A stretch of DNA of 36,391 bases, taken from sequence record NC_034620.1; one strand, 5' to 3'. Shown piece after piece: positions 1 to 36,391 of the stretch (its first letter is position 1; every line of letters starts with the position of its first letter). A program made the position numbers and the translations under genes. The notes beneath the pieces were generated by a model. The model was not told where the DNA came from. It searched no databases and saw only the letters and a list, made by a program, of their open reading frames with translations.

Positions 1-485
1 TTATTAATTCTAGCAAACCAAAACCTCAATTTAAAGTTAGAAAGTTACTAAACATATTGTTAATTTGTTATATTTATTCATTTCGTTATGTGTTGTTAGT
101 TTTTTGCGTTTAGTGTTGGAGAAATTGGAAGTTTAGAAAGAAAAGTTTATATACCAGAAGAAAGCATTTAATAATGTTAGTGGGCATTATCTTTCTTCTT
201 ATTATTATTTTTTTATATATATTATTATTAACATTTAAATTAGATAATTATATAACTACATAGTTAGTATATTATATAATTAGCTAACTACTAATTAGTA
301 GTTTATAATTAATAAATTATAGTCAAACCCAAAATAGGTTTTTTTACGCGATTTCACCGTTACAAAACAATTTATCTCTACAGCGTTGAAAGAAATTGGA
401 GATGCAAAGTTGATACGTTCTCTATAGAGAGAGATGATGGAGAAGAAACGAAAAATAGAGATCTAAAAAAGGAGAGAAAAATTTA
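1..485 (+). repeat. Left inverted terminal repeat (truncated copy)
   Basis: Base i pairs with base 35494-i; checked at both ends (1-36 vs 35458-35493; 421-485 vs 35009-35073). The match breaks at 486/35008. Confidence 0.95.
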
Positions 486-2133: not shown

Positions 2134-2658
2134 ATGAATATAGTTTTAAGAGAATTTGATAAAGAAAAATTTAATATAAATATCACTGCATGGTTAGATA
2201 TTGATAATGATATTCAAAGTTGTTATACAAATTTTAAAGAAATTACGATAGTTACAATAATTCAAATGATTTCTGAAATTGTAGAAAAAGATGGCTGGGA
2301 TTTACAATATTTTGAGAAAGATGAAGAAGAAAAATTATTTAATGCATTTATGAAAAATTCTAAAATTACAGTAAGATTAAATAAAAAGATAGATGAATTA
2401 AATTATGTTTTTGAAGAAACTATTGTTGAATTTGATTTTCCAGAAATTGAGAAAAAGAGAATTGCGGAAATATATTTGAGTAATATACTTAATAATCTTT
2501 ATTATTTTGATGAATGTATTATTTATAATTTAGATGAAGGAGATATTAATTTAATACCAGAAGTTTTAAGTGATGAAGTTTATCAATTATTAAGTCCTGA
2601 TGAAATAAAGGGAAAATTTAAGGAAAAGATAGAGAAAATTATTAGTGACAAAGAATAA
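2134..2658 (+). CDS. Acidic hypothetical protein (174 aa)
   Basis: Long ORF; TATA+TGTCAT at about 2095-2109; leaderless start. Confidence 0.85.
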   Translation: MNIVLREFDKEKFNINITAWLDIDNDIQSCYTNFKEITIVTIIQMISEIVEKDGWDLQYFEKDEEEKLFNAFMKNSKITVRLNKKIDELNYVFEETIVEFDFPEIEKKRIAEIYLSNILNNLYYFDECIIYNLDEGDINLIPEVLSDEVYQLLSPDEIKGKFKEKIEKIISDKE

Positions 2659-2673
2659 ATATGGTGCAGAAAT

Positions 2674-2835
2674 ATGAATTTAAATGCTCCATTGGATCCA
2701 ATATGGCTTTTGGTTATTGTTGGAATTTTTTATGAATTATTATTTATCTTTTTCTTATTGGAATTAAGACAGATAATGAAACGAATTGAAGAAGAAGAAT
2801 TAGTCAGAATGTTAAAAAAGAAATATAAAAATTAA
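2674..2835 (+). CDS. Small single-pass membrane protein (53 aa; not in ORF track)
   Basis: Hand-translated MNLNAPLDPIWLLVIVGIFYELLFIFFLLELRQIMKRIEEEELVRMLKKKYKN; GGTG RBS at 2663-2666; hydrophobic segment followed by a charged tail. Confidence 0.65.
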   Translation: MNLNAPLDPIWLLVIVGIFYELLFIFFLLELRQIMKRIEEEELVRMLKKKYKN

Positions 2836-2934
2836 ATAAATTTTCACTAAAAACATGGCGTAAGCTACAAAGATAAAAGTTTAGAGAAAACTTTAAATAT
2901 GAGTTTTTACATATGTTATATTGGTGATAAAAAG

Positions 2935-3102
2935 ATGAAAGTCGTACAAGTTCAAAACACAAGATATTTCATTCAAGACAAAGATGATTTAATAAGCGTA
3001 ACTCATGAGTTGGCAAGGCAAGGCTATAGTATAAGTCAAATAGCTCAAGTGTTAGGAATAAGTGAACGACAAGTAAGAAAGTATTTGGAAGATTGTTGGT
3101 AA
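2935..3102 (+). CDS. HTH DNA-binding protein (55 aa), homolog of SIRV1 ORF55 / SIRV2 gp01 (acr-associated regulator type)
   Basis: MKVVQVQNTRYFIQDKDDLISVTHELARQGYSISQIAQVLGISERQVRKYLE aligns along its length with recalled SIRV1 ORF55. HTH motif is clear. ATG 2935 has a GGTGA RBS. Confidence 0.88.
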   Translation: MKVVQVQNTRYFIQDKDDLISVTHELARQGYSISQIAQVLGISERQVRKYLEDCW

Positions 3103-3306
3103 GCTAATTCTTTTTTTAATTTTCAATTTTCTCTTTTTCTTTTATTTTTATATTTATATTTTTGTTGTCTTTGTTTTCTATCTTTATCAATAATTTTTCT
3201 CAAATTTCAAATAATAATTCTACTAGTTTAAGAAGTTTATAAACCGAAAAATAAAAAAAGTTATATATTTGTCATATCTAGTTAGTTGTTTTTTGGAGGA
3301 AAGAAA

Positions 3307-3759
3307 ATGAGTGAAAATAACCTTATAAATGAGATAATTAACAGTTTGGAAGTTTTAAAACAACAAATTGATGAAATTAAGACAAAATTAATATCTACAA
3401 ATCATGACAAAGATATAGAAAATGTTTTTGAAAAATTAAGAAAAATTGCAGATGATCATTTAATTAATGCTATAATTTTTGTTTCAAACAGTGAAGTAAA
3501 ATATATTGCAATTCGTTCAGATAGCACTGGATATAAAACTCTTGTCATTTTAAATAATAAGGCATATTATTTCTATGAATATTCAATTATCAAAGGAAGA
3601 TTACAATTAAGATATTTCAAAGAATATGATATTCCAGAAGATATTATAAAAATATTAGAGAAATTGCCAGAGTCGAATATTGATTATGCAGAACCGAGAT
3701 ATTTCAAATTATATTATATTTTGAAAAAACATTATTCAATAGATTTAATTAAAGAGTAA
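3307..3759 (+). CDS. Hypothetical protein (150 aa), paralog of 32611..33075
   Basis: GGAGG RBS before ATG 3307; TATA+GTC at 3261-3275; shares FEKLR, IIFV...VKYIA and EY.IPEDII blocks with the right-arm gene. Confidence 0.88.
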   Translation: MSENNLINEIINSLEVLKQQIDEIKTKLISTNHDKDIENVFEKLRKIADDHLINAIIFVSNSEVKYIAIRSDSTGYKTLVILNNKAYYFYEYSIIKGRLQLRYFKEYDIPEDIIKILEKLPESNIDYAEPRYFKLYYILKKHYSIDLIKE

Positions 3760-4027
3760 TGTCAATTTTATCTTTCTTTTTTATTTTTCGATTTTTTCAT
3801 TTTTTACGTAACATTTTTCTGCTTCTTATTTTGATGTTTTGCCAAAATAAAGTTAATTTTTTTCTTTTTTAGTTTTAACTTTCTATTTTTTATTTTTATG
3901 TTCCATTTTTTTCACTTTTGATATATTATTTCTAAACTGGAGAAATTAAAAAAGCGTAAGATAGAAACGTAAAACTGTAGAGAAAACTTTATATATAAGT
4001 TTTTACATAATAGATATTAGTGATAAA

Positions 4028-4276
4028 ATGAGTCAAGTAGAAAAGCAAAAAGTTAAATTAGGTAAAAAAGAAAAAGCGGTTTTAGATTTTTTGAAATCGT
4101 ATCCTCAAGGAATATGGAAAGATGAGGTTATTAGACATTTTTCATGGGCATCAAGATATGACTCTGTAATGAGTAAACGTTTGCACAATCTGCAGAAAAA
4201 AGGATTAATAGTGATAAAAGCAGAAGTTAATCCTTCCTCTGGAAGGTCAAAACAAAGAGTATATTTAAAACAATAA
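4028..4276 (+). CDS. Winged-helix DNA-binding protein (82 aa)
   Basis: wHTH pattern LGKKEKAVLDFLK...KRLHNLQKKGLI...GRSKQRVY; early promoter at 3978-3997. Confidence 0.8.
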   Translation: MSQVEKQKVKLGKKEKAVLDFLKSYPQGIWKDEVIRHFSWASRYDSVMSKRLHNLQKKGLIVIKAEVNPSSGRSKQRVYLKQ

Positions 4277-4309
4277 TTTTTTTCTTTAAGCTTTTTCTTT
4301 TTTTTAGTT

Positions 4310-4501
4310 TTATTTTAGTTCTCTAATTAAATTTTCTATCTCACCTATTATATCTTCTATTTCTTCAATTTTTGCTTTTTCAAAATTATGTTCTTCATAA
4401 TTTTCAATAAGTTTCATAATTTCTTCTAATTTTTCTTTTGCATTTTGCAATTCTTTTATTGCATCTTCAAGATCTGATATTATTTCATCATAATCTATCA
4501 T
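4310..4501 (-). CDS. Acidic coiled-coil protein (63 aa)
   Basis: Heptad pattern; last gene of the minus-strand replication gene run. Confidence 0.75.
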   Translation of the reverse strand: MIDYDEIISDLEDAIKELQNAKEKLEEIMKLIENYEEHNFEKAKIEEIEDIIGEIENLIRELK

Positions 4502-4504
4502 TTT

Positions 4505-4771
4505 TTACACCTCTTTTATAATTTTTGAAACTTTTCCAATTGTTACATTTATTGTATTGCCAAAAGTTGAAAACCAAATTTCAAAATTTAATAGTTTATT
4601 ATCAATTTCTAAATAACCAGCAATTTTATTTTTATTTTTTGTATAAAATATTATTCTTGGTTTTTCGTTAAAAATAAAAGCTTTATTTAGTAAATTTAAA
4701 ATATCTTTTTCATTCATATTTTCAACTTTGTTTTTTATTTTTTCCATTTGTTCTAAAAATTTTTCACTCAT
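4505..4771 (-). CDS. Conserved rudiviral hypothetical protein (88 aa)
   Basis: ORF in a tight minus-strand cluster downstream of the Cas4-like gene. Confidence 0.8.
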   Translation of the reverse strand: MSEKFLEQMEKIKNKVENMNEKDILNLLNKAFIFNEKPRIIFYTKNKNKIAGYLEIDNKLLNFEIWFSTFGNTINVTIGKVSKIIKEV

Positions 4772-28871: not shown

Positions 28872-30062
28872 ATGGAATTTAAAAGAGAAAGTTCAGGTAT
28901 AATAAAAAGCTTTTCAACATTAGATATTTTTTCAATTAATCTTTTGTATATGGGCATTTTGAGCGGTATAAGTTATCCATTATTTGTCTCTGAAATGATG
29001 AAAAATGTAAACTTATTAATTGCGGTTCTTATAGGCTCTGCTTTTGGAATTCCGTTACTTGTAATGTATTATTTACTGACTAAGAAAATTCCGTTAAACG
29101 GGGGCGATTACGCTTATATTCGCTCAACATTTTCTCCAAAGTTTTATACAATTTTTGGAATTTCGTTATGGCTGATTTATGTATTTTCAGCACCAGTTTT
29201 ATCAAACCTTGTATTGTTAAATTTCAATATTCCAATATTCGATAAGTTTTTAATTTCAGAACTATTATTTGGGACTGCGTTACTTAGTGTTAGCAAAAAA
29301 ACAATTTATGCTTATTTAGTAGACGGATTAGCAATTTTACAAATAATTGTTTCTTTAATTCTGCCAATTTCAAGTTTCCATTTCCAAATACAAAACTTTA
29401 CAATATCAAATACTTTACTTTCAGCTTTATTATTTGATTTATCTATGTTTTTGTTTTTAAATGCAATTAGCTATATAGCTGGCGAAACAAAAAACATAAG
29501 CAAAAACGCTAAAATCGGATATTTTGCAAGTTATTTAGTAGTTACTGTATTAGCAGTATTAGACAGTTATTCAAATTTAAATATATTATTTCTATTAATG
29601 CCAATATGGTTTATGAGTTATATTTTTGTAACTTCCATGATTCAAAGTAGATTAATTCAAAATTTAGCATTTGATAAAATCTTACCTGAAAAATTTGCAA
29701 AAATAACGCCTAATGCTTTACTGTTAATCTTTATCGCTGATACAATTGCAAACGTTTTAGAAAATCTATTTAATTTCTCAATTTCATTTGGTCTTGATGG
29801 ATTATTATTCATCTTCTGGAATTTTATAATTGTAAGTCTAGCATTTCTAAAATTGACAAATAAAAAACTATTATTTTCAATAGTAATGATTAGCCTAATT
29901 TTACAGATCTTCTTATTCTTTTATTTAGGAATACAAAATTCAATATTCTATAATTTTGTAATTGAAGGAAATCTCATATACGCAATATTGAGAATTGCAA
30001 TAATGCCAATTTTAGGAGGAATTATTTACTTGTTAAGGAGAAAAATTATAAACGCTGAATAA
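28872..30062 (+). CDS. APC-superfamily amino acid transporter-like membrane protein (SIRV ORF399 type)
   Basis: About 11-12 hydrophobic segments; PLNGGDYAYIR and SYIAGETKN APC motifs. Confidence 0.9.
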   Translation: MEFKRESSGIIKSFSTLDIFSINLLYMGILSGISYPLFVSEMMKNVNLLIAVLIGSAFGIPLLVMYYLLTKKIPLNGGDYAYIRSTFSPKFYTIFGISLWLIYVFSAPVLSNLVLLNFNIPIFDKFLISELLFGTALLSVSKKTIYAYLVDGLAILQIIVSLILPISSFHFQIQNFTISNTLLSALLFDLSMFLFLNAISYIAGETKNISKNAKIGYFASYLVVTVLAVLDSYSNLNILFLLMPIWFMSYIFVTSMIQSRLIQNLAFDKILPEKFAKITPNALLLIFIADTIANVLENLFNFSISFGLDGLLFIFWNFIIVSLAFLKLTNKKLLFSIVMISLILQIFLFFYLGIQNSIFYNFVIEGNLIYAILRIAIMPILGGIIYLLRRKIINAE

Positions 30063-30064
30063 AG

Positions 30065-30967
30065 ATGAAATTGGTATTTGGCATTTCTAGTTCAAGAAGT
30101 TATTTTTTTAAAACTAATTTTCCAGTCTTAATTAATCAGTTGAGATTTAGAAAAAAAACATGGAAAAATGAAACTTGGGTTGATAGTGGCGGATTTCAAA
30201 TTATAATGCATAACTTAAAAATTTCTGTAAATGATGTCTTGCAAAAGTATAAAAGTGTTAATGCTTACGCATTTTTTTCTCTCGATATTCCTAGCGTTTT
30301 TGCACCTCTTGACAAACGGAATTTTGAATATTTTGAGTATCTCTACACAAAAATTGAATGGATAGAAAAAATTATACCAGTTTTACATATTTATCCACTT
30401 CAAGATTTGGATAAAGCTATTGATTTTTACAAACAATACAGTTATTATTTTGCAATTGGCGGAATAATGACTTCTAGCAAATTAAGAGTTTTACAATATA
30501 CATTTCCATGGATTTATTACCTAAAAAGAAAAGTATCTTATCTTCACGTTCTCGGTATATCATCTCCATATTTTTTACAAATTTTTAATAATATACAAAG
30601 CATGGATACCGCATTTTGTTCAATAATTTCAGCATTTAAAGAAATAATTTGGTTTGATAGTTCTAGGAGATATGTTGGAAATATGGAAACGAGAAGAAAA
30701 AAATATAAAATTACAAAAGACGAAAAAGAACAACTTTTTGAATTTCTAGATAAACATAACTTTCCATTTGAATATGATTTAAGTAATAGAAATATTCTAG
30801 AACTTATAAATGCATATATGTTATTATATAATAATTGGAAAATTAAGAATAAGTATACTGAATATGCAGAAAAACTTAGAAAAATGGGATTAGACAGTTT
30901 GACAAGCGAGTTAATTAGAAATTATAAAATTGCAAATGAAATATTAAAACAGAAAAGAGAAAAATAG
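30065..30967 (+). CDS. tRNA-guanine transglycosylase-like protein (SIRV ORF310 type)
   Basis: WVDSGGFQ, FAIGG, HVLG, SMDT TGT TIM-barrel motifs; no CxCxxC zinc site. Confidence 0.87.
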   Translation: MKLVFGISSSRSYFFKTNFPVLINQLRFRKKTWKNETWVDSGGFQIIMHNLKISVNDVLQKYKSVNAYAFFSLDIPSVFAPLDKRNFEYFEYLYTKIEWIEKIIPVLHIYPLQDLDKAIDFYKQYSYYFAIGGIMTSSKLRVLQYTFPWIYYLKRKVSYLHVLGISSPYFLQIFNNIQSMDTAFCSIISAFKEIIWFDSSRRYVGNMETRRKKYKITKDEKEQLFEFLDKHNFPFEYDLSNRNILELINAYMLLYNNWKIKNKYTEYAEKLRKMGLDSLTSELIRNYKIANEILKQKREK

Positions 30968-30981
30968 AAGATAAAAAAATA

Positions 30982-31539
30982 TTAACTTAACAATTTGTCT
31001 AATTGCTCATCATAAATTACTTCAACCTTTCCATCTTTAATCACTATTTTACCTGACAAATTCTCGCCGAAATATTGTATCAAATATCCGTATCCAGCAG
31101 TTCTAACTCTACCGCTTATGCTATACTGAATTTCTACATCTCCATTACAATAAAGATGTTTAACCTCTCCGAGACTTCCTCTAGGACTTCTCAATATTTC
31201 AAAATCTTCACATTCACCGCTAAGCACTTTGAAATAAACACCACCTCTATAACCGCTTGGTAATTCAATAACATATAATGTATTTCCCGGTTCAAACTTT
31301 ATGATTGGAGTTCCCTTTTCTGTTACAACAATTTTTGCATTTGCTAATTTTACCGTAAACTCATTAACTCTATCAAATTCTATAAAACTTCCATTTTCAC
31401 CGCTTTCTACAAATCTTCCACTGAAATATATAACTCTTCCTCTAGCTCTATCACCAATTTCAGTTATATCCAATGCCTTGTCCTCAAAAAATGGATATTT
31501 CTCATCTTTTAAACTAACTTGAACTTTTAACTTATTCAT
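30982..31539 (-). CDS. Beta-rich hypothetical early protein (185 aa), anti-defence candidate
   Basis: Early promoter at 31574-31592, GGTGA RBS; GDRARGR, SGYRG and SPRGSLG motifs; next to acrIIIB1. Confidence 0.85.
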   Translation of the reverse strand: MNKLKVQVSLKDEKYPFFEDKALDITEIGDRARGRVIYFSGRFVESGENGSFIEFDRVNEFTVKLANAKIVVTEKGTPIIKFEPGNTLYVIELPSGYRGGVYFKVLSGECEDFEILRSPRGSLGEVKHLYCNGDVEIQYSISGRVRTAGYGYLIQYFGENLSGKIVIKDGKVEVIYDEQLDKLLS

Positions 31540-31798
31540 TCTCTTATCACCAATATCTATTATGTAAATCTTTGTATTTAAAGTTATCTCTTAATTTTTA
31601 CGTTTATATCTTACGCTATTTTTATCATTAAATTTCTTACTGTATAATTCCTCTTGATTTTAAAATATTATCTCAAAATTGAGAAAAAATAAGCATGAAG
31701 ATAGATGATAAAGAGTAGAAAAATAAAATTAATAAGTTAAAAATTATAGATTAACAAAAAGAAAAAAATTATAGATAAAAAACGATTAATTTAAAACT

Positions 31799-32521
31799 TT
31801 AATCAGCTTTATTTTTTCTAGGTCTTGGATGTGTAATTAGATAATATTTATTTCCGCTTAGCATAACCGAATTTTCTCCATGATCTGCTGATTTCATAAC
31901 AAATGTTGTAGAATTTTGAAGATATACTAAAAACGTAGTACCAGGTGTTGAAAATAAATCAGTAGCTAATACAGTATTTGAAAATTGTATTTCATGATTA
32001 TAAATTGTCAAACTGTTTACATGATTGAGACTAAGATTTAATTCGCTATTTGGCGATGGAACTTCATAAATTTCCAAATTGCCTTGATTATATGTCAAAT
32101 GAAATTCGTATAATTGACCTTTTATGAAATAATCATAAATTTCTATTGCATAATTGGTATAATTAATAAGCAATTTTTTAGAATTAAGATTTGAAAGTTC
32201 TATTTGTTTTAATATGAAGTTTTTCATATCATCTAAACTTCTTGTAATTTTATTTCTTCTATAAACTGAAATTATTGATGGAGCTGGCGTATAATATATG
32301 CCTTTAGTTTCATCTAATTGATTACCATCATACTTAAAACAACCGTTAAACGTTAATCCTGACCTAGAAATATATTTAGAACAATTTACATAATGATTTG
32401 AAATTAACGAAATTTTTGTAACTTGACCATTTGAATGTTTCAACATAAAAACGATTGGCAAATGAATTATTTGTTTTAAAATTTTTACTTCATATTTTTT
32501 TTGATCTTCAACTTGGGACAT
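31799..32521 (-). CDS. acrIIIB1: Anti-CRISPR AcrIIIB1 homolog (about 240 aa)
   Basis: Colinear matches to recalled SIRV2 gp48: VNC..Y.SRSG.T..GC, GIY.TP..SIIS, RS.DD.K, NY.IEIYD...KG..YEF, IYNH, TPG...LVY, S.DH, C-terminal HPRPR. ATG 32521 has an AGGTG RBS. Confidence 0.88.
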   Translation of the reverse strand: MSQVEDQKKYEVKILKQIIHLPIVFMLKHSNGQVTKISLISNHYVNCSKYISRSGLTFNGCFKYDGNQLDETKGIYYTPAPSIISVYRRNKITRSLDDMKNFILKQIELSNLNSKKLLINYTNYAIEIYDYFIKGQLYEFHLTYNQGNLEIYEVPSPNSELNLSLNHVNSLTIYNHEIQFSNTVLATDLFSTPGTTFLVYLQNSTTFVMKSADHGENSVMLSGNKYYLITHPRPRKNKAD

Positions 32522-32610
32522 ACGACCTGACACCTGTAAATGAAAATATGCTATATGACAAATATAAAAATATCTTGAGTTTTCGATTTATAAAAAAGAA
32601 AAAAATAATA

Positions 32611-33075
32611 TCAAACTTTGACAAATTCGATTTTATAATTTTTCTTCAAAAGATAATATACTTTAAAATAGACAGGATCGACATGACTGACAATAGACTC
32701 TGGTATCATCTTCAACAAAACAATAATATCTTCTGGAATATTATATTCATTACCATAATATATAATTATTTTATTTTCTTTAGTTTCAAATCTATACCAA
32801 GAATACGCTTTTCTATAATCTATAACATAATTATGAGATCCATTATTCCACTCATCATATGCAATATATTTTACGCCATCATCATTAACAAAAATTATAG
32901 AACCAACATATCGATCATTTACGGTATTTCTTAATTTTTCAAATAGATATTCCTTTAACTCTCTATAATTGGCTTTTTGCATTTCATCCCATAACTGAAT
33001 AATTTCATATCTTAAAATCTCTAATTGATTTATTATTTGATTTATTTTCTCTAATTGTTGATCAAATTTATTCAT
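32611..33075 (-). CDS. Hypothetical protein (154 aa), paralog of 3307..3759
   Basis: Shared blocks with the left-arm gene; TATA+GTC at 33106-33121; GGTGAG RBS. Confidence 0.88.
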   Translation of the reverse strand: MNKFDQQLEKINQIINQLEILRYEIIQLWDEMQKANYRELKEYLFEKLRNTVNDRYVGSIIFVNDDGVKYIAYDEWNNGSHNYVIDYRKAYSWYRFETKENKIIIYYGNEYNIPEDIIVLLKMIPESIVSHVDPVYFKVYYLLKKNYKIEFVKV

Positions 33076-33252
33076 TTTCGCTTCTCACCAAATCAATTTG
33101 TGAGTTATGACAAATTTAAAACTTTCTTTATCTTTCGATTTATGAATTTCTTAAAATATTAGTATTAATATTACAAACATAAGAAAAATCAAGCATGGAG
33201 AAAGAAAACAAAAAACAAAAAAATAAAAAATAAAGAATACGAAAGAAAAAAA

Positions 33253-33567
33253 TTAGTATATATTCCAAATTAATAAAGCAATTAACTTTAATATTTCTTC
33301 CCTTGCACCCTCTGCTATCTTCTGATTATTTACCTCTTTGTAAACCTTATAAAGTCTTGCAATTTTTTGTAGCGTCTTAACAAAATCAATATCTTCTGGA
33401 TTTAAATAAGTAAAGCTAATTTCATTTTTCGTATCATTTACTACGACATATAGCTTTGAATATTCTATATGTCTTCCCTTAACTTGTTCTAACTGAATCA
33501 AAAAACTAATATTAACTTGTCCTTCCAACTTTTCTTTAAACGAATTTTGACTTTTTTCTTCCGCCAT
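33253..33567 (-). CDS. Hypothetical early protein (104 aa)
   Basis: Promoter GATAGAGAAAGATTTAAATAT at 33600-33620 (minus). Confidence 0.82.
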   Translation of the reverse strand: MAEEKSQNSFKEKLEGQVNISFLIQLEQVKGRHIEYSKLYVVVNDTKNEISFTYLNPEDIDFVKTLQKIARLYKVYKEVNNQKIAEGAREEILKLIALLIWNIY

Positions 33568-33718
33568 TTTTATTCACAATTTTACATATGCATAAACTCA
33601 TATTTAAATCTTTCTCTATCTCTTTACTTCTTTATCTTTCATTTTTTTTATCTTCAACTTCTACAAATCTGTAGAAAACTTTAAATATCTAAATATCGAA
33701 AGTATACATGTGAGTCAA

Positions 33719-34078
33719 ATGAAAACACAAGAAAAAAACGAATGGTTGGAAAATACAAAGTACATAGTTAGAAAAATAAGCAAAACAGACATTAGAAATA
33801 CATTAATGTTTTTTTACGAGATGAATGAAGTACCTGAAATAATAATATTAAATAGAGGAAATATACATTTAGAAGGCTTCATAAAATTAAGCAAGAAAAT
33901 ATTTAAATTTGATTTGATATTTTTAAGAAAAGAAGAAAAAACCATATTAAGAGTATCATTACAATATGGAAAAGAAAAACTTGAGAAATCTGAAGAAATT
34001 TTTATTATAGAATATAATGACAGTCTTGAAATACAGCTTGCCGAAACTAAACAATATTTGTTTAGTGTATACTTCTAA
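33719..34078 (+). CDS. Hypothetical early protein (119 aa), oriented opposite to the rest of the right arm
   Basis: Promoter GTAGAAAACTTTAAATAT at 33671-33688; GTGAG RBS. Confidence 0.8.
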   Translation: MKTQEKNEWLENTKYIVRKISKTDIRNTLMFFYEMNEVPEIIILNRGNIHLEGFIKLSKKIFKFDLIFLRKEEKTILRVSLQYGKEKLEKSEEIFIIEYNDSLEIQLAETKQYLFSVYF

Positions 34079-34325
34079 CTTTTAATTTAAATTTATTTTT
34101 TTATACCTCATTTTTCTTAACTTCTCTATAATATTTCAAAACTTCTTTTATCTCTCTATCTTTCTAGATCTCTATCTTTCGTTATTTTTATCGTCTAATC
34201 CCTTACTTAGAAATCCTTCTTTATCCTGAAATAATAAAACGGAAATGAGAAAAATTTGACATAAAAATAACTAAAATAAGAAAATAAAAGCTAAAAGTTA
34301 AAAAAGAAAAATAAAATAAAAAAAA

Positions 34326-34553
34326 TTAATCTATATCTGACAAAAGGAAATACTTTAAACCGTCACGTTTAGCTTTTATTAAAGATGTTTTTCCTATTTC
34401 TTTAGCTTTCTTGCCAACTACAACTTTCCAATAATAATGTTCACAATTGTGATAACTTGCTAAATATCCATCTATCCTTCTTTCGCCTAGTTTCTTATTG
34501 CAAAGTAAACATATATATACTTCCCATCTTCCGATTATATATTTTTGTATCAT
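34326..34553 (-). CDS. Small putative zinc-binding protein (75 aa)
   Basis: CLLC and HNC; promoter at 34586-34603 duplicated from the ITR edge. Confidence 0.78.
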   Translation of the reverse strand: MIQKYIIGRWEVYICLLCNKKLGERRIDGYLASYHNCEHYYWKVVVGKKAKEIGKTSLIKAKRDGLKYFLLSDID

Positions 34554-34772
34554 TTTCACTCACATATAATTTTGCATGTCCTCCTTTATAAATTTTTCTC
34601 TCCTTTTTTAGATCTCTATTTTTCGTTATTTTTATCATTAGGCTATACAACATACGATTTCTCTATATTTAGTAATATTATCTCAAATATGAGAAAAATT
34701 GAGCATAATTACAGAAAATAAAAAATTATAAAACAGAAGAAAAATAGGAAATTAAAAATAACAATTAAAAAA

Positions 34773-34970
34773 TTAACTTAATGTGGTAATTTCTAAATAA
34801 AAATCTTTTCCAAATTGGTACAATTTTATATGAACTTTTCCTTGTTTCTCAATAAAAGAATAATAAAAGTCGGCTTCGCCTTTGTATGGAATAAAATTTT
34901 TGTCTTGTTGAAGCTGTTTTGCTAATTCATTTGCTTGTTTCTTGCTTATTTTTACTTTTGTGTCTACCAT
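34773..34970 (-). CDS. Hypothetical early protein (65 aa), first gene of the right arm
   Basis: Promoter at the ITR boundary (35005-35023, minus). Confidence 0.78.
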   Translation of the reverse strand: MVDTKVKISKKQANELAKQLQQDKNFIPYKGEADFYYSFIEKQGKVHIKLYQFGKDFYLEITTLS

Positions 34971-35435
34971 TTTTCATTCACAATACATACTATCTCTAAA
35001 CTCATATTTAAATTTTTCTCTCCTTTTTTAGATCTCTATTTTTCGTTTCTTCTCCATCATCTCTCTCTATAGAGAACGTATCAACTTTGCATCTCCAATT
35101 TCTTTCAACGCTGTAGAGATAAATTGTTTTGTAACGGTGAAATCGCGTAAAAAAACCTATTTTGGGTTTGACTATAATTTATTAATTATAAACTACTAAT
35201 TAGTAGTTAGCTAATTATATAATATACTAACTATGTAGTTATATAATTATCTAATTTAAATGTTAATAATAATATATATAAAAAAATAATAATAAGAAGA
35301 AAGATAATGCCCACTAACATTATTAAATGCTTTCTTCTGGTATATAAACTTTTCTTTCTAAACTTCCAATTTCTCCAACACTAAACGCAAAAAACTAACA
35401 ACACATAACGAAATGAATAAATATAACAAATTAAC

Positions 35436-35565
35436 AATATGTTTAGTAACTTTCTAACTTTAAATTGAGGTTTTGGTTTGCTAGAATTAATAATTTAAAT
35501 AAATTATGAATATGTTTAGTAACTAAAAGTTTTAAATTGTGGGTTTGGTTTCCTACAAATTATAA
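35436..35565 (+). repeat. Imperfect tandem direct repeat, period 73 bp
   Basis: AATATGTTTAGTAACT...TTTAAATTG...GG.TTTGGTTT.CTA at 35436 and 35509. Confidence 0.75.
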
Positions 35566-35665
35566 ATTATAATATTATAGTTAGTAGTTATTAATATCCA
35601 CAAATTAACATTTATTACAAATTTCCAAAGTTTGAATTTGCAAATTTTATATTACAAATTTCACT

Positions 35666-35957
35666 AAATGACAGATTAATTGTAATTTAGGAATTTAGAA
35701 AATTAGTATTTTTTATCATAGTTGGAAAATTATTTGGAAATGTAGAATTATTTGGAATTTAGGAATTTCCAATTTTTTAACTTTTTTGCAGAAAATGATA
35801 GATTATTTCAAATTTAGGAAATTAGGAATTTACAATTTTTCTCATTTTTTGCACAATTTACGCAAAATGACAGATTAATTGGAATTTTGGAATTTTGAAT
35901 TTTTTGCACCGCTCCAATTAATATTTGGAGGTGTAGAATTAATTGGAATTTCCAATT
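35666..35957 (+). repeat. Subterminal degenerate repeats including the rudiviral AATTTAGGAATTTAGGAATTT-like motif
   Basis: AATTTAGGAAATTAGGAATTT at 35811-35831; related units start AAATGA(C/T)AGATTA (35666, 35793, 35865) or TGTAGAATTA (35741, 35932). Confidence 0.75.
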
Positions 35958-36391
35958 TATTGCGAAAGTTGGGAAATTTGCGAAAAAAACGAAAAAAACG
36001 AAAGAAATTGGAATTTTCAATTTTTTGCATTAGTTGTGAAATTTTCGCAGAAAATGAAAAAAACTACAAATACCTAGTTAATATTCTGCAATTGCAAAGG
36101 CTTAATTAGGGAACTGTAGTTTTTTTCATTTTCTGCGAAAATTTCACAACTAATGCAAAAAATTGAAAATTCCAATTTCTTTCGTTTTTTTCGTTTTTTT
36201 CGCAAATTTCCCAACTTTCGCAATAAATTGGAAATTCCAATTAATTCTACACCTCCAAATATTAATTGGAGCGGTGCAAAAAATTCAAAATTCCAAAATT
36301 CCAATTAATCTGTCATTTTGCGTAAATTGTGCAAAAAATGAGAAAAATTGTAAATTCCTAATTTCCTAAATTTGAAATAATCTATAATTTT
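35792..36391. other. Fold-back read through the covalently closed terminal hairpin or a concatemer junction
   Basis: Base i pairs with 72183-i; arms 35798-36068 and 36115-36385; central TGCAATTGCA at 36087-36096. Mirror-image ORFs in the track confirm the symmetry. Confidence 0.88.

Follow-up and report, generated by a model that had tools for sequence, protein, structure and literature searches.

A predicted anti-defence gene cluster in the right arm of rudivirus SIRV9 and the wider family of its ORF51 protein

In SIRV2, early genes such as acrID1, acrIIIB1 and aca8 have a common regulatory sequence with a strong promoter formed by a B recognition element (BRE) and a TATA box. Bhoobalan-Chitty et al. 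(2024, Nat Commun; PMC11065993) described this and used the sequence to predict anti-defence genes (ADGs) in a total of 57 viruses of archaea, SIRV9 included. The present analysis concerns the right arm of SIRV9 and, within it, the product of open reading frame (ORF) 51, as found in a stretch of 36,391 nucleotides (nt) from sequence record NC_034620.1, here called the window. The region of interest, 3,989 bp at positions 30,982 to 34,970, is a 100% match to KY744228/NC_034620, a record of the same length as the window (36,391 bp); the window is the archaeal rod-shaped virus (rudivirus) SIRV9 and the region its right end. The guanine-cytosine (GC) content is about 25% along the whole window, and all 58 coding sequences (CDS) of the record are annotated as "hypothetical protein".

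In Supplementary Data 1 of PMC11065993, CCL41_gp51 is listed as ADG.06, gp52 as AcrIIIB1, gp53 as ADG.18, gp54 as ADG.01, gp55 as ADG.21, gp56 as ADG.12, gp58 as ADG.10 and gp07 as Aca8, and none of the six numbered ADGs is assigned a function. The best joint explanation of the region, with a probability of about 70%, is that it represents the right-arm early-gene cluster of SIRV9, of the anti-defence type, and that ORF51 is a binder, not a conventional enzyme. The anti-defence part is already known. The initial annotation, made from the sequence alone, had proposed an anti-defence island through guilt-by-association, and this reasoning is sound, all seven genes being in the catalogue; however, the island was already published as a prediction, nothing is added here beyond the 2024 catalogue, and the guess that the 185-residue protein is an enzymatic inhibitor is unsupported. 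Newly recognised, as a modest lead, is that ADG.06 is the Sulfolobales branch of a wider unnamed family and no small orphan confined to rudiviruses.

Promoters and gene content compared with SIRV2

In rudiviruses carrying Aca8, the ADGs of the terminal clusters stand singly in the genome arms, and every one of them has a strong BRE/TATA promoter lying within a regulatory sequence that is specific to the virus and common to aca8 as well (PMC11065993). The same architecture is present in SIRV9. That every gene has its own promoter, as had been proposed from the sequence, holds for all seven genes, where a TATA box (TTTAWATA, with zero or one mismatch) lies 39-49 nt upstream of the start codon and is preceded by a purine-rich BRE (ORF51-56 and ORF58), and in most of the seven a Shine-Dalgarno sequence resembling GGTGA shortly precedes the ATG. 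The 16-mer GAGAWARNTTTAWAWA, allowing at most one mismatch, occurs 13 times compared to 1.5 expected, a count that no shuffled sequence reached, and 12 of the 13 matches are located in the two genome arms, within about 4-5 kb or less of either record end. Matches are placed at ORF51, ORF54, ORF55, ORF56 and ORF58, at a distance of 38-43 nt ahead of the start of the gene. In the left arm they are all on the plus strand (6/6), while five of the six in the right arm are on the minus strand, the exception being the ORF55 promoter. The presence of an own promoter for each right-arm gene far exceeds chance.

Regarding the sequences around these promoters, the BRE/TATA promoter of ORF51 (31575-31590, minus strand; GAGATAACTTTAAATA) has flanks like the regulatory sequences of aca8 and ORF9, the resemblance extending over about 90 nt of the upstream and leader region. 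The gene aca8 (ORF7; 2935-3102, plus strand), which lies outside the region and belongs to the same regulatory unit, encodes a putative winged helix-turn-helix (wHTH) repressor that would act on the early regulatory sequence common to these genes; its start was amended to 2935 in PMC11065993, and the annotated start (2899) falls on a TATA box at 2884-2899. Genes of this virus, among them aca8, thus have the sequence surrounding the promoter in common. The promoters of ORF54 (33601-33616, minus strand), ORF55 (33672-33687, plus strand, with one mismatch and the only right-arm match directed at the genome end), ORF56 (34585-34600, minus strand) and ORF58 (35005-35020, minus strand) belong to the same BRE/TATA type. 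A ATAGAGATCTA box is common to ORF1, ORF56, ORF58, where it is placed upstream of the promoter, and an orphan regulatory module at 34130-34190 (minus strand), which combines the box with a degenerate TATA sequence as a copy of the upstream regulatory module. Downstream of this orphan copy there is only a nine-codon ORF, and the module points antisense into the inverted ORF55; it may be left over from a lost gene or give rise to an antisense RNA.

A second promoter variant (AAATCGAAA, 11 nt, TTTTWWATTTGTCATA) occurs at ORF52 and ORF53 and nowhere else in the genome, in modules at 32554-32589 for ORF52 (AAATCGAAA...TTTTTATATTTGTCATA) and 33106-33141 for ORF53, both on the minus strand. This hints at a regulation of both genes separate from that of the other arm genes. 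At the opposite side of the genes, a T-rich tract follows each of the seven, with 53-75% T across 60 nt, and such tracts are the usual archaeal termination signal. As read from these elements, the arm appears to be composed of seven independently transcribed, monocistronic units, with an early-type regulatory sequence in common with aca8 and T-rich terminator tracts.

ORF52 (gp52; 31799-32521, minus strand; 240 amino acids), named as acrIIIB1 in the initial annotation, is confirmed as a homologue of SIRV2 gp48 (AcrIIIB1/AcrIA4) by tblastn, where 96% of its length aligns to SIRV2 30778-31521 (gp48/ORF249) at 38% identity (E 1e-36), and by local search, with 40% identity (E 4e-46). Homologues are also found by tblastn in betalipothrixviruses and further rudiviruses. 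The homology of ORF52 to gp48 covers the full length, and arm and orientation are the same, but ORF52 is diverged, and its promoter is the second variant, seen elsewhere only at ORF53. Since SIRV2 gp48 inhibits subtype I-A too (preprint 10.1101/2024.04.02.587611), ORF52 may by analogy act on both type III-B and type I-A CRISPR-Cas. As an indirect hint, the isolation paper of SIRV9 reports plaques on LAL14/1, although spacer matches should make this host immune (PMC5454432).

The remaining content is different. Comparing the SIRV9 arm proteins (ORF1-9 and ORF51-58) with the SIRV2 right arm, only ORF52 and Aca8 match, and the other genes common to both viruses in this comparison are core genes only, namely ORF45-47 and the pyramid protein ORF17. 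Thus, the SIRV9 architecture is no different from that of the rudiviral ADG clusters, whereas its gene content, AcrIIIB1 apart, is not that of SIRV2, and the SIRV9 roles are predicted ones. The accessory content of the arm seems to have been fully turned over relative to SIRV2, as expected for arms-race genes, which makes the island reading reasonable. Following SIRV2 (PMC11065993), transcription of the right-arm genes would begin as soon as the cell is infected and be repressed later by Aca8, and the proteins made would disarm host defences. Among the families predicted in that work, the validated toxin-antitoxin inhibitor belongs to ADG.17, a family not present in SIRV2.

Early promoters mark timing and not function, and this leaves room for another explanation, in which the six small genes, entirely or in part, serve early host takeover or regulation, for example in the control of transcription, replication, the cell cycle or the exclusion of superinfecting viruses, instead of defence inhibition. 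Considering the slot beside gp48 in SIRV2, it is occupied by gp47 (AcrIA3), a wHTH transcription repressor acting on the host cas operon (preprint 10.1101/2024.04.02.587611); ORF56 of SIRV9 bears a Zn-finger-like pattern and is basic (isoelectric point 9.4); and cell-cycle regulators are known in Sulfolobales viruses (PMC9976892). However, the genes adjoin a validated anti-CRISPR (Acr) and vary strongly in content among close relatives, and the same promoter class in SIRV2 drives the validated acrID1 and acrIIIB1 as well as gp47 (AcrIA3) and aca8, so a takeover role for these genes is rather unlikely. ORF51 itself is located in the slot of gp47, directly inward of the AcrIIIB1 gene and with its own early promoter, but both proteins have no sequence similarity, gp47 being a DNA-binding wHTH protein of 100-112 amino acids and ORF51 a beta protein of 185 amino acids.

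Structure and wider family of ORF51

ORF51 (gp51, ADG.06; 30982-31539, minus strand) is a protein of 185 amino acids with loops bearing the motifs TEKGT, GYRG, SPxGSLG and GR, and an acidic C-terminal helix (DEQLDKLLS). A word-based homology search recovered 45 clusters, with identities of 58% or more and lengths of about 185 amino acids throughout, and their alignment was the input for AlphaFold2. The resulting model is confident, with a predicted local distance difference test score (pLDDT) of 92.9 and a predicted template modelling score (pTM) of 0.89, and it is all-beta, with fifteen strands, a short internal helix (residues 152-157) and the C-terminal helix, the latter at lower confidence.

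Structure prediction followed by Foldseek had been named in the initial annotation as one of the checks of its proposal, and its outcome does not favour an enzyme, as neither an enzyme nor another known fold was matched. Pfam, NCBIfam and PADLOC contain no family for ORF51, and the single PHROG matched has no assigned function. Searching the model against the PDB with Foldseek gave nothing with E < 0.001, and the comparison with 48,161 representative chains by VIA-align reached a best Z of 4.3, below the meaningful level, all the matches being generic immunoglobulin (Ig)-like sandwiches at residues 60-170. In BFVD only the SIRV11 orthologue was retrieved, the ESM Atlas gave template modelling (TM) scores of at most 0.34 by structure and nothing usable by its feature search, and the family profile found no relative among the PDB sequences. 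The fold is therefore best described, from the model, as a confidently predicted beta sandwich without known relative.

A link to the ASH/PapD-like Ig domain at residues 65-135 was considered and rejected. The profile search had caught long ASH-repeat proteins through summed weak repeats, and ORF51 is not placed in the ASH clan because direct profile comparison by hhalign gives a probability of 6.7%.

At the sequence level, a profile search of 1.84 billion representatives returned 71 proteins with E < 1e-3, most of them of 150-210 amino acids and devoid of Pfam domains, although a few long bacterial ASH-repeat proteins scored as well. The four loop motifs are common to the family, and the C-terminus is usually acidic and leucine-containing, of the ELxxLL type. 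Conservation was counted over 48 sequences with a mean identity of 26%, where the only invariant columns are R98 (in GYRG) and S118 and G124 (in SPxGSLG), followed by T73, G76, G96, G99, G121, G143, R144 and G170, conserved in at least 90%. ORF51 indeed contains the three Gly/Arg motifs noticed initially, GDRARGR, SGYRG and SPRGSLG; of these, GYRG and SPxGSLG are meaningful, as they hold the most conserved positions and form the family signature, while GDRARGR is not conserved. A catalytic metal site formed by Cys110, His128 and Cys131 was also considered and rejected, because these residues are conserved in the rudiviral clade only and not across the wider family. The near-neutral charge of the family means that it is no obvious DNA mimic or basic nucleic-acid binder.

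In the secondary-structure map of the model, GYRG, SPxGSLG and GR fall in loops at residues 94-100, 117-124 and 142-151. If the strands follow a simple up-and-down order, these conserved loops would be grouped at one end of the sandwich.

The distribution of the family was surveyed outside cellular genomes and covers Sulfolobales viruses and plasmids, an Aquificae virus and phage-like contigs, with contig GC contents from 25 to 57%. Close homologues of ORF51 are found in non-rudiviral Sulfolobales elements with no other gene in common with SIRV9. One of these contigs carries ParA, ParB, a small TrmB-type wHTH gene, ThyX and dUTPase, the homologue having its own TAGAAAAGTTTAAATA promoter, and the ParA/ParB/wHTH set is read as a partition set like that of plasmid pNOB8. 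A distant member is DAD54634 from Aquificae Joseph's Coat Spring virus (AJCSV), with an hhalign probability of 99.9% (E 1e-34), and NCBIfam and PADLOC gave nothing for two distant members. The gene tends to be placed near contig ends, as seen in six of ten IMG/VR loci, in loci L007-L009 and in AJCSV. Sigma-70-type promoters can be read upstream of it in L007, L008 and L018, and ribosome sites of the AGGAGG type in most loci. No neighbouring gene is common to three or more of the 16 loci. As a whole, these traits are those of an accessory gene that moves among the viruses and plasmids of both prokaryotic domains.

Two loci have particular arrangements. In the phage-like contig L026 (IMG/VR 3300033233_000081; 2437-4533), three tandem paralogues of the family are contained in about 2.1 kb, the last two adjacent, an expansion similar to that of the AcrID1 family in SIRV2. 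In AJCSV (L013, BK013346; 747-2071), the family gene overlaps a downstream annotated peptidase gene by 4 nt, a pairing absent in the other 15 loci.

AcrIII-1 and the mode of action of ORF51

The absence of acrIII-1, on which the initial annotation had based its enzymatic proposal, is real: a six-frame search with PF08960 (DUF1874/AcrIII-1) found nothing in the window, and tblastn with SIRV2 gp37 detects SIRV1, 2 and 3 but no Yellowstone SIRVs. The proposal drawn from it is that ORF51 is a nuclease for second messengers, or a sponge, of new fold, acting on cyclic oligoadenylate (cOA) and replacing the missing AcrIII-1. In favour of this, Arg, Ser, Thr and Gly located in loops make up the invariant and nearly invariant positions, a composition suited to phosphate binding, and the occurrence of the family in archaeal viruses as well as bacteriophage-like contigs, a likeness with DUF1874, fits a conserved small molecule over a lineage-specific protein. 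Moreover, DUF1874 is present without the ORF51 family in SIRV1, 2 and 3, the reverse is seen in nine Yellowstone-type SIRVs (isolates SIRV4-7 and SIRV9-11, plus V3 and V60), and Aquificae viruses split likewise, ACSV having DUF1874 only and AJCSV the ORF51 family only.

However, ORF51 has no sequence match to AcrIII-1, is all-beta and has no conserved His; in fact, no invariant His, Lys or acidic residue is present in the family. Among the structures solved up to April 2026, no ring nuclease or nucleotide sponge appears in the Foldseek or VIA-align match lists, the best VIA-align matches being the Ig-like ones mentioned above. The alternation is also not strict. It holds in the cultured rudiviruses and both Aquificae viruses, where it is confounded with phylogeny and geography, but two of the ten IMG/VR contigs have both the ORF51 family and PF08960, in one of them through a borderline match (26.4 bits, with a cut-off of 26) located in the same series of small genes at a distance of 3.5 kb, and SIRV8 and isolate V65 have neither family. 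A strict either/or relation was therefore discarded. The need for a replacement is itself weakened, because AcrIII-1 is reported to lack Acr function in the native SIRV2 system (bioRxiv 10.1101/2023.01.10.523387; PMC11065993). Altogether, a second-messenger nuclease or sponge replacing AcrIII-1 is unsupported as first proposed, and even in the form of a new fold it is quite improbable.

The preferred explanation of ORF51 as a binder takes the same residues in a different manner. The protein would act stoichiometrically through the conserved loop site and the flexible acidic C-terminal helix, on a target common to bacteria and archaea, possibly a phosphate-bearing ligand or a conserved component of defence; the best guess is that it is no conventional enzyme. 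Several points weigh against this explanation and against the cluster assignment that accompanies it. The early timing of the SIRV9 arm genes is extrapolated from SIRV2, and the functions of the right-arm genes are predictions by analogy. The binder idea derives from a missing enzyme-like fold in the model, which is weak evidence, as a new fold can be an enzyme, and the invariant Ser with two conserved Arg could serve a metal-independent phosphodiester chemistry. In addition, residues 1-59 were hardly covered by the fold searches, and the position of the conserved loops at one end comes from the secondary-structure map and not from coordinates.

A broader proposal is that the ORF51 family constitutes a new anti-defence class of archaeal viruses, plasmids and bacteriophages, in which an Arg/Ser/Gly loop site on a novel beta fold binds or degrades a cross-domain defence component, such as a cyclic-oligonucleotide signal. 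This is doubtful at present; if true, the family would be the second cross-domain counter-defence family beside AcrIII-1, and its target would be of general interest to counter-defence biology. The family is in any case a well-defined target for structural work and for experimental work with the SIRV2/LAL14/1 genetic system, with a confidently modelled fold without known relative and few invariant loop residues.

Neighbouring genes and genome ends

The ORF coordinates and sizes of the initial annotation all agree with the ORF calls and with the annotation of the record. Outward of ORF52, ORF53 (gp53, ADG.18; 32611-33075, minus strand) encodes 154 amino acids, predicted as a long N-terminal helix and a beta-rich part, and belongs to a very narrow family with 9 close relatives; its structure model, obtained from only 10 near-identical sequences in the alignment, has a pLDDT of 52 and a pTM of 0.36 and was discarded as unusable. 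It is followed by ORF54 (gp54, ADG.01; 33253-33567, minus strand), with 104 amino acids, and by ORF55 (gp55, ADG.21; 33719-34078), with 119 amino acids and the sole plus-strand gene of the right arm. ORF56 (gp56, ADG.12; 34326-34553, minus strand) encodes the 75-residue protein that had been marked as Zn-binding, and the pattern CxxC...HxCxH, a possible Zn site, is indeed present. The outermost gene is ORF58 (gp58, ADG.10; 34773-34970, minus strand), with 65 amino acids. NCBIfam and PADLOC scans of seven of the eight annotated right-arm proteins, all but ORF57, gave nothing, and the sequences of ORF52-55 have no significant relatives among the PDB chains.

The annotated ORF57 (34495-34653, minus strand; 52 amino acids) overlaps the start of ORF56. 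It is probably spurious and not a gene, because it contains the BRE/TATA promoter of ORF56, has no promoter of its own and is missing from the published ADG list (PMC11065993).

Just inward of the right arm, ORF49 (28872-30062, plus strand; 396 amino acids) weakly matches an amino-acid permease (PF13520) at E 1.4e-5, which does not reach the cut-off; in a rudivirus, a membrane transporter of the kind hinted at would be unusual.

Regarding the genome ends, a promoter-like element, AAGAAAAGTTTATATA, is present with identical flanks in the inverted terminal repeats, at 138-153 (plus strand) and 35341-35356 (minus strand). The right-hand copy has no ORF of at least 40 amino acids downstream in the ORF list for 29500-36391, and position 522 is the start of the first CDS annotated on the left side. 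The final 600 nt of the record (35792-36391) form an inverted repeat of 300+300 nt, 97% complementary and without spacer, and from this it follows that the SIRV9 record runs through a covalently closed hairpin end at 36091/36092, the last 300 nt being a fold-back copy.

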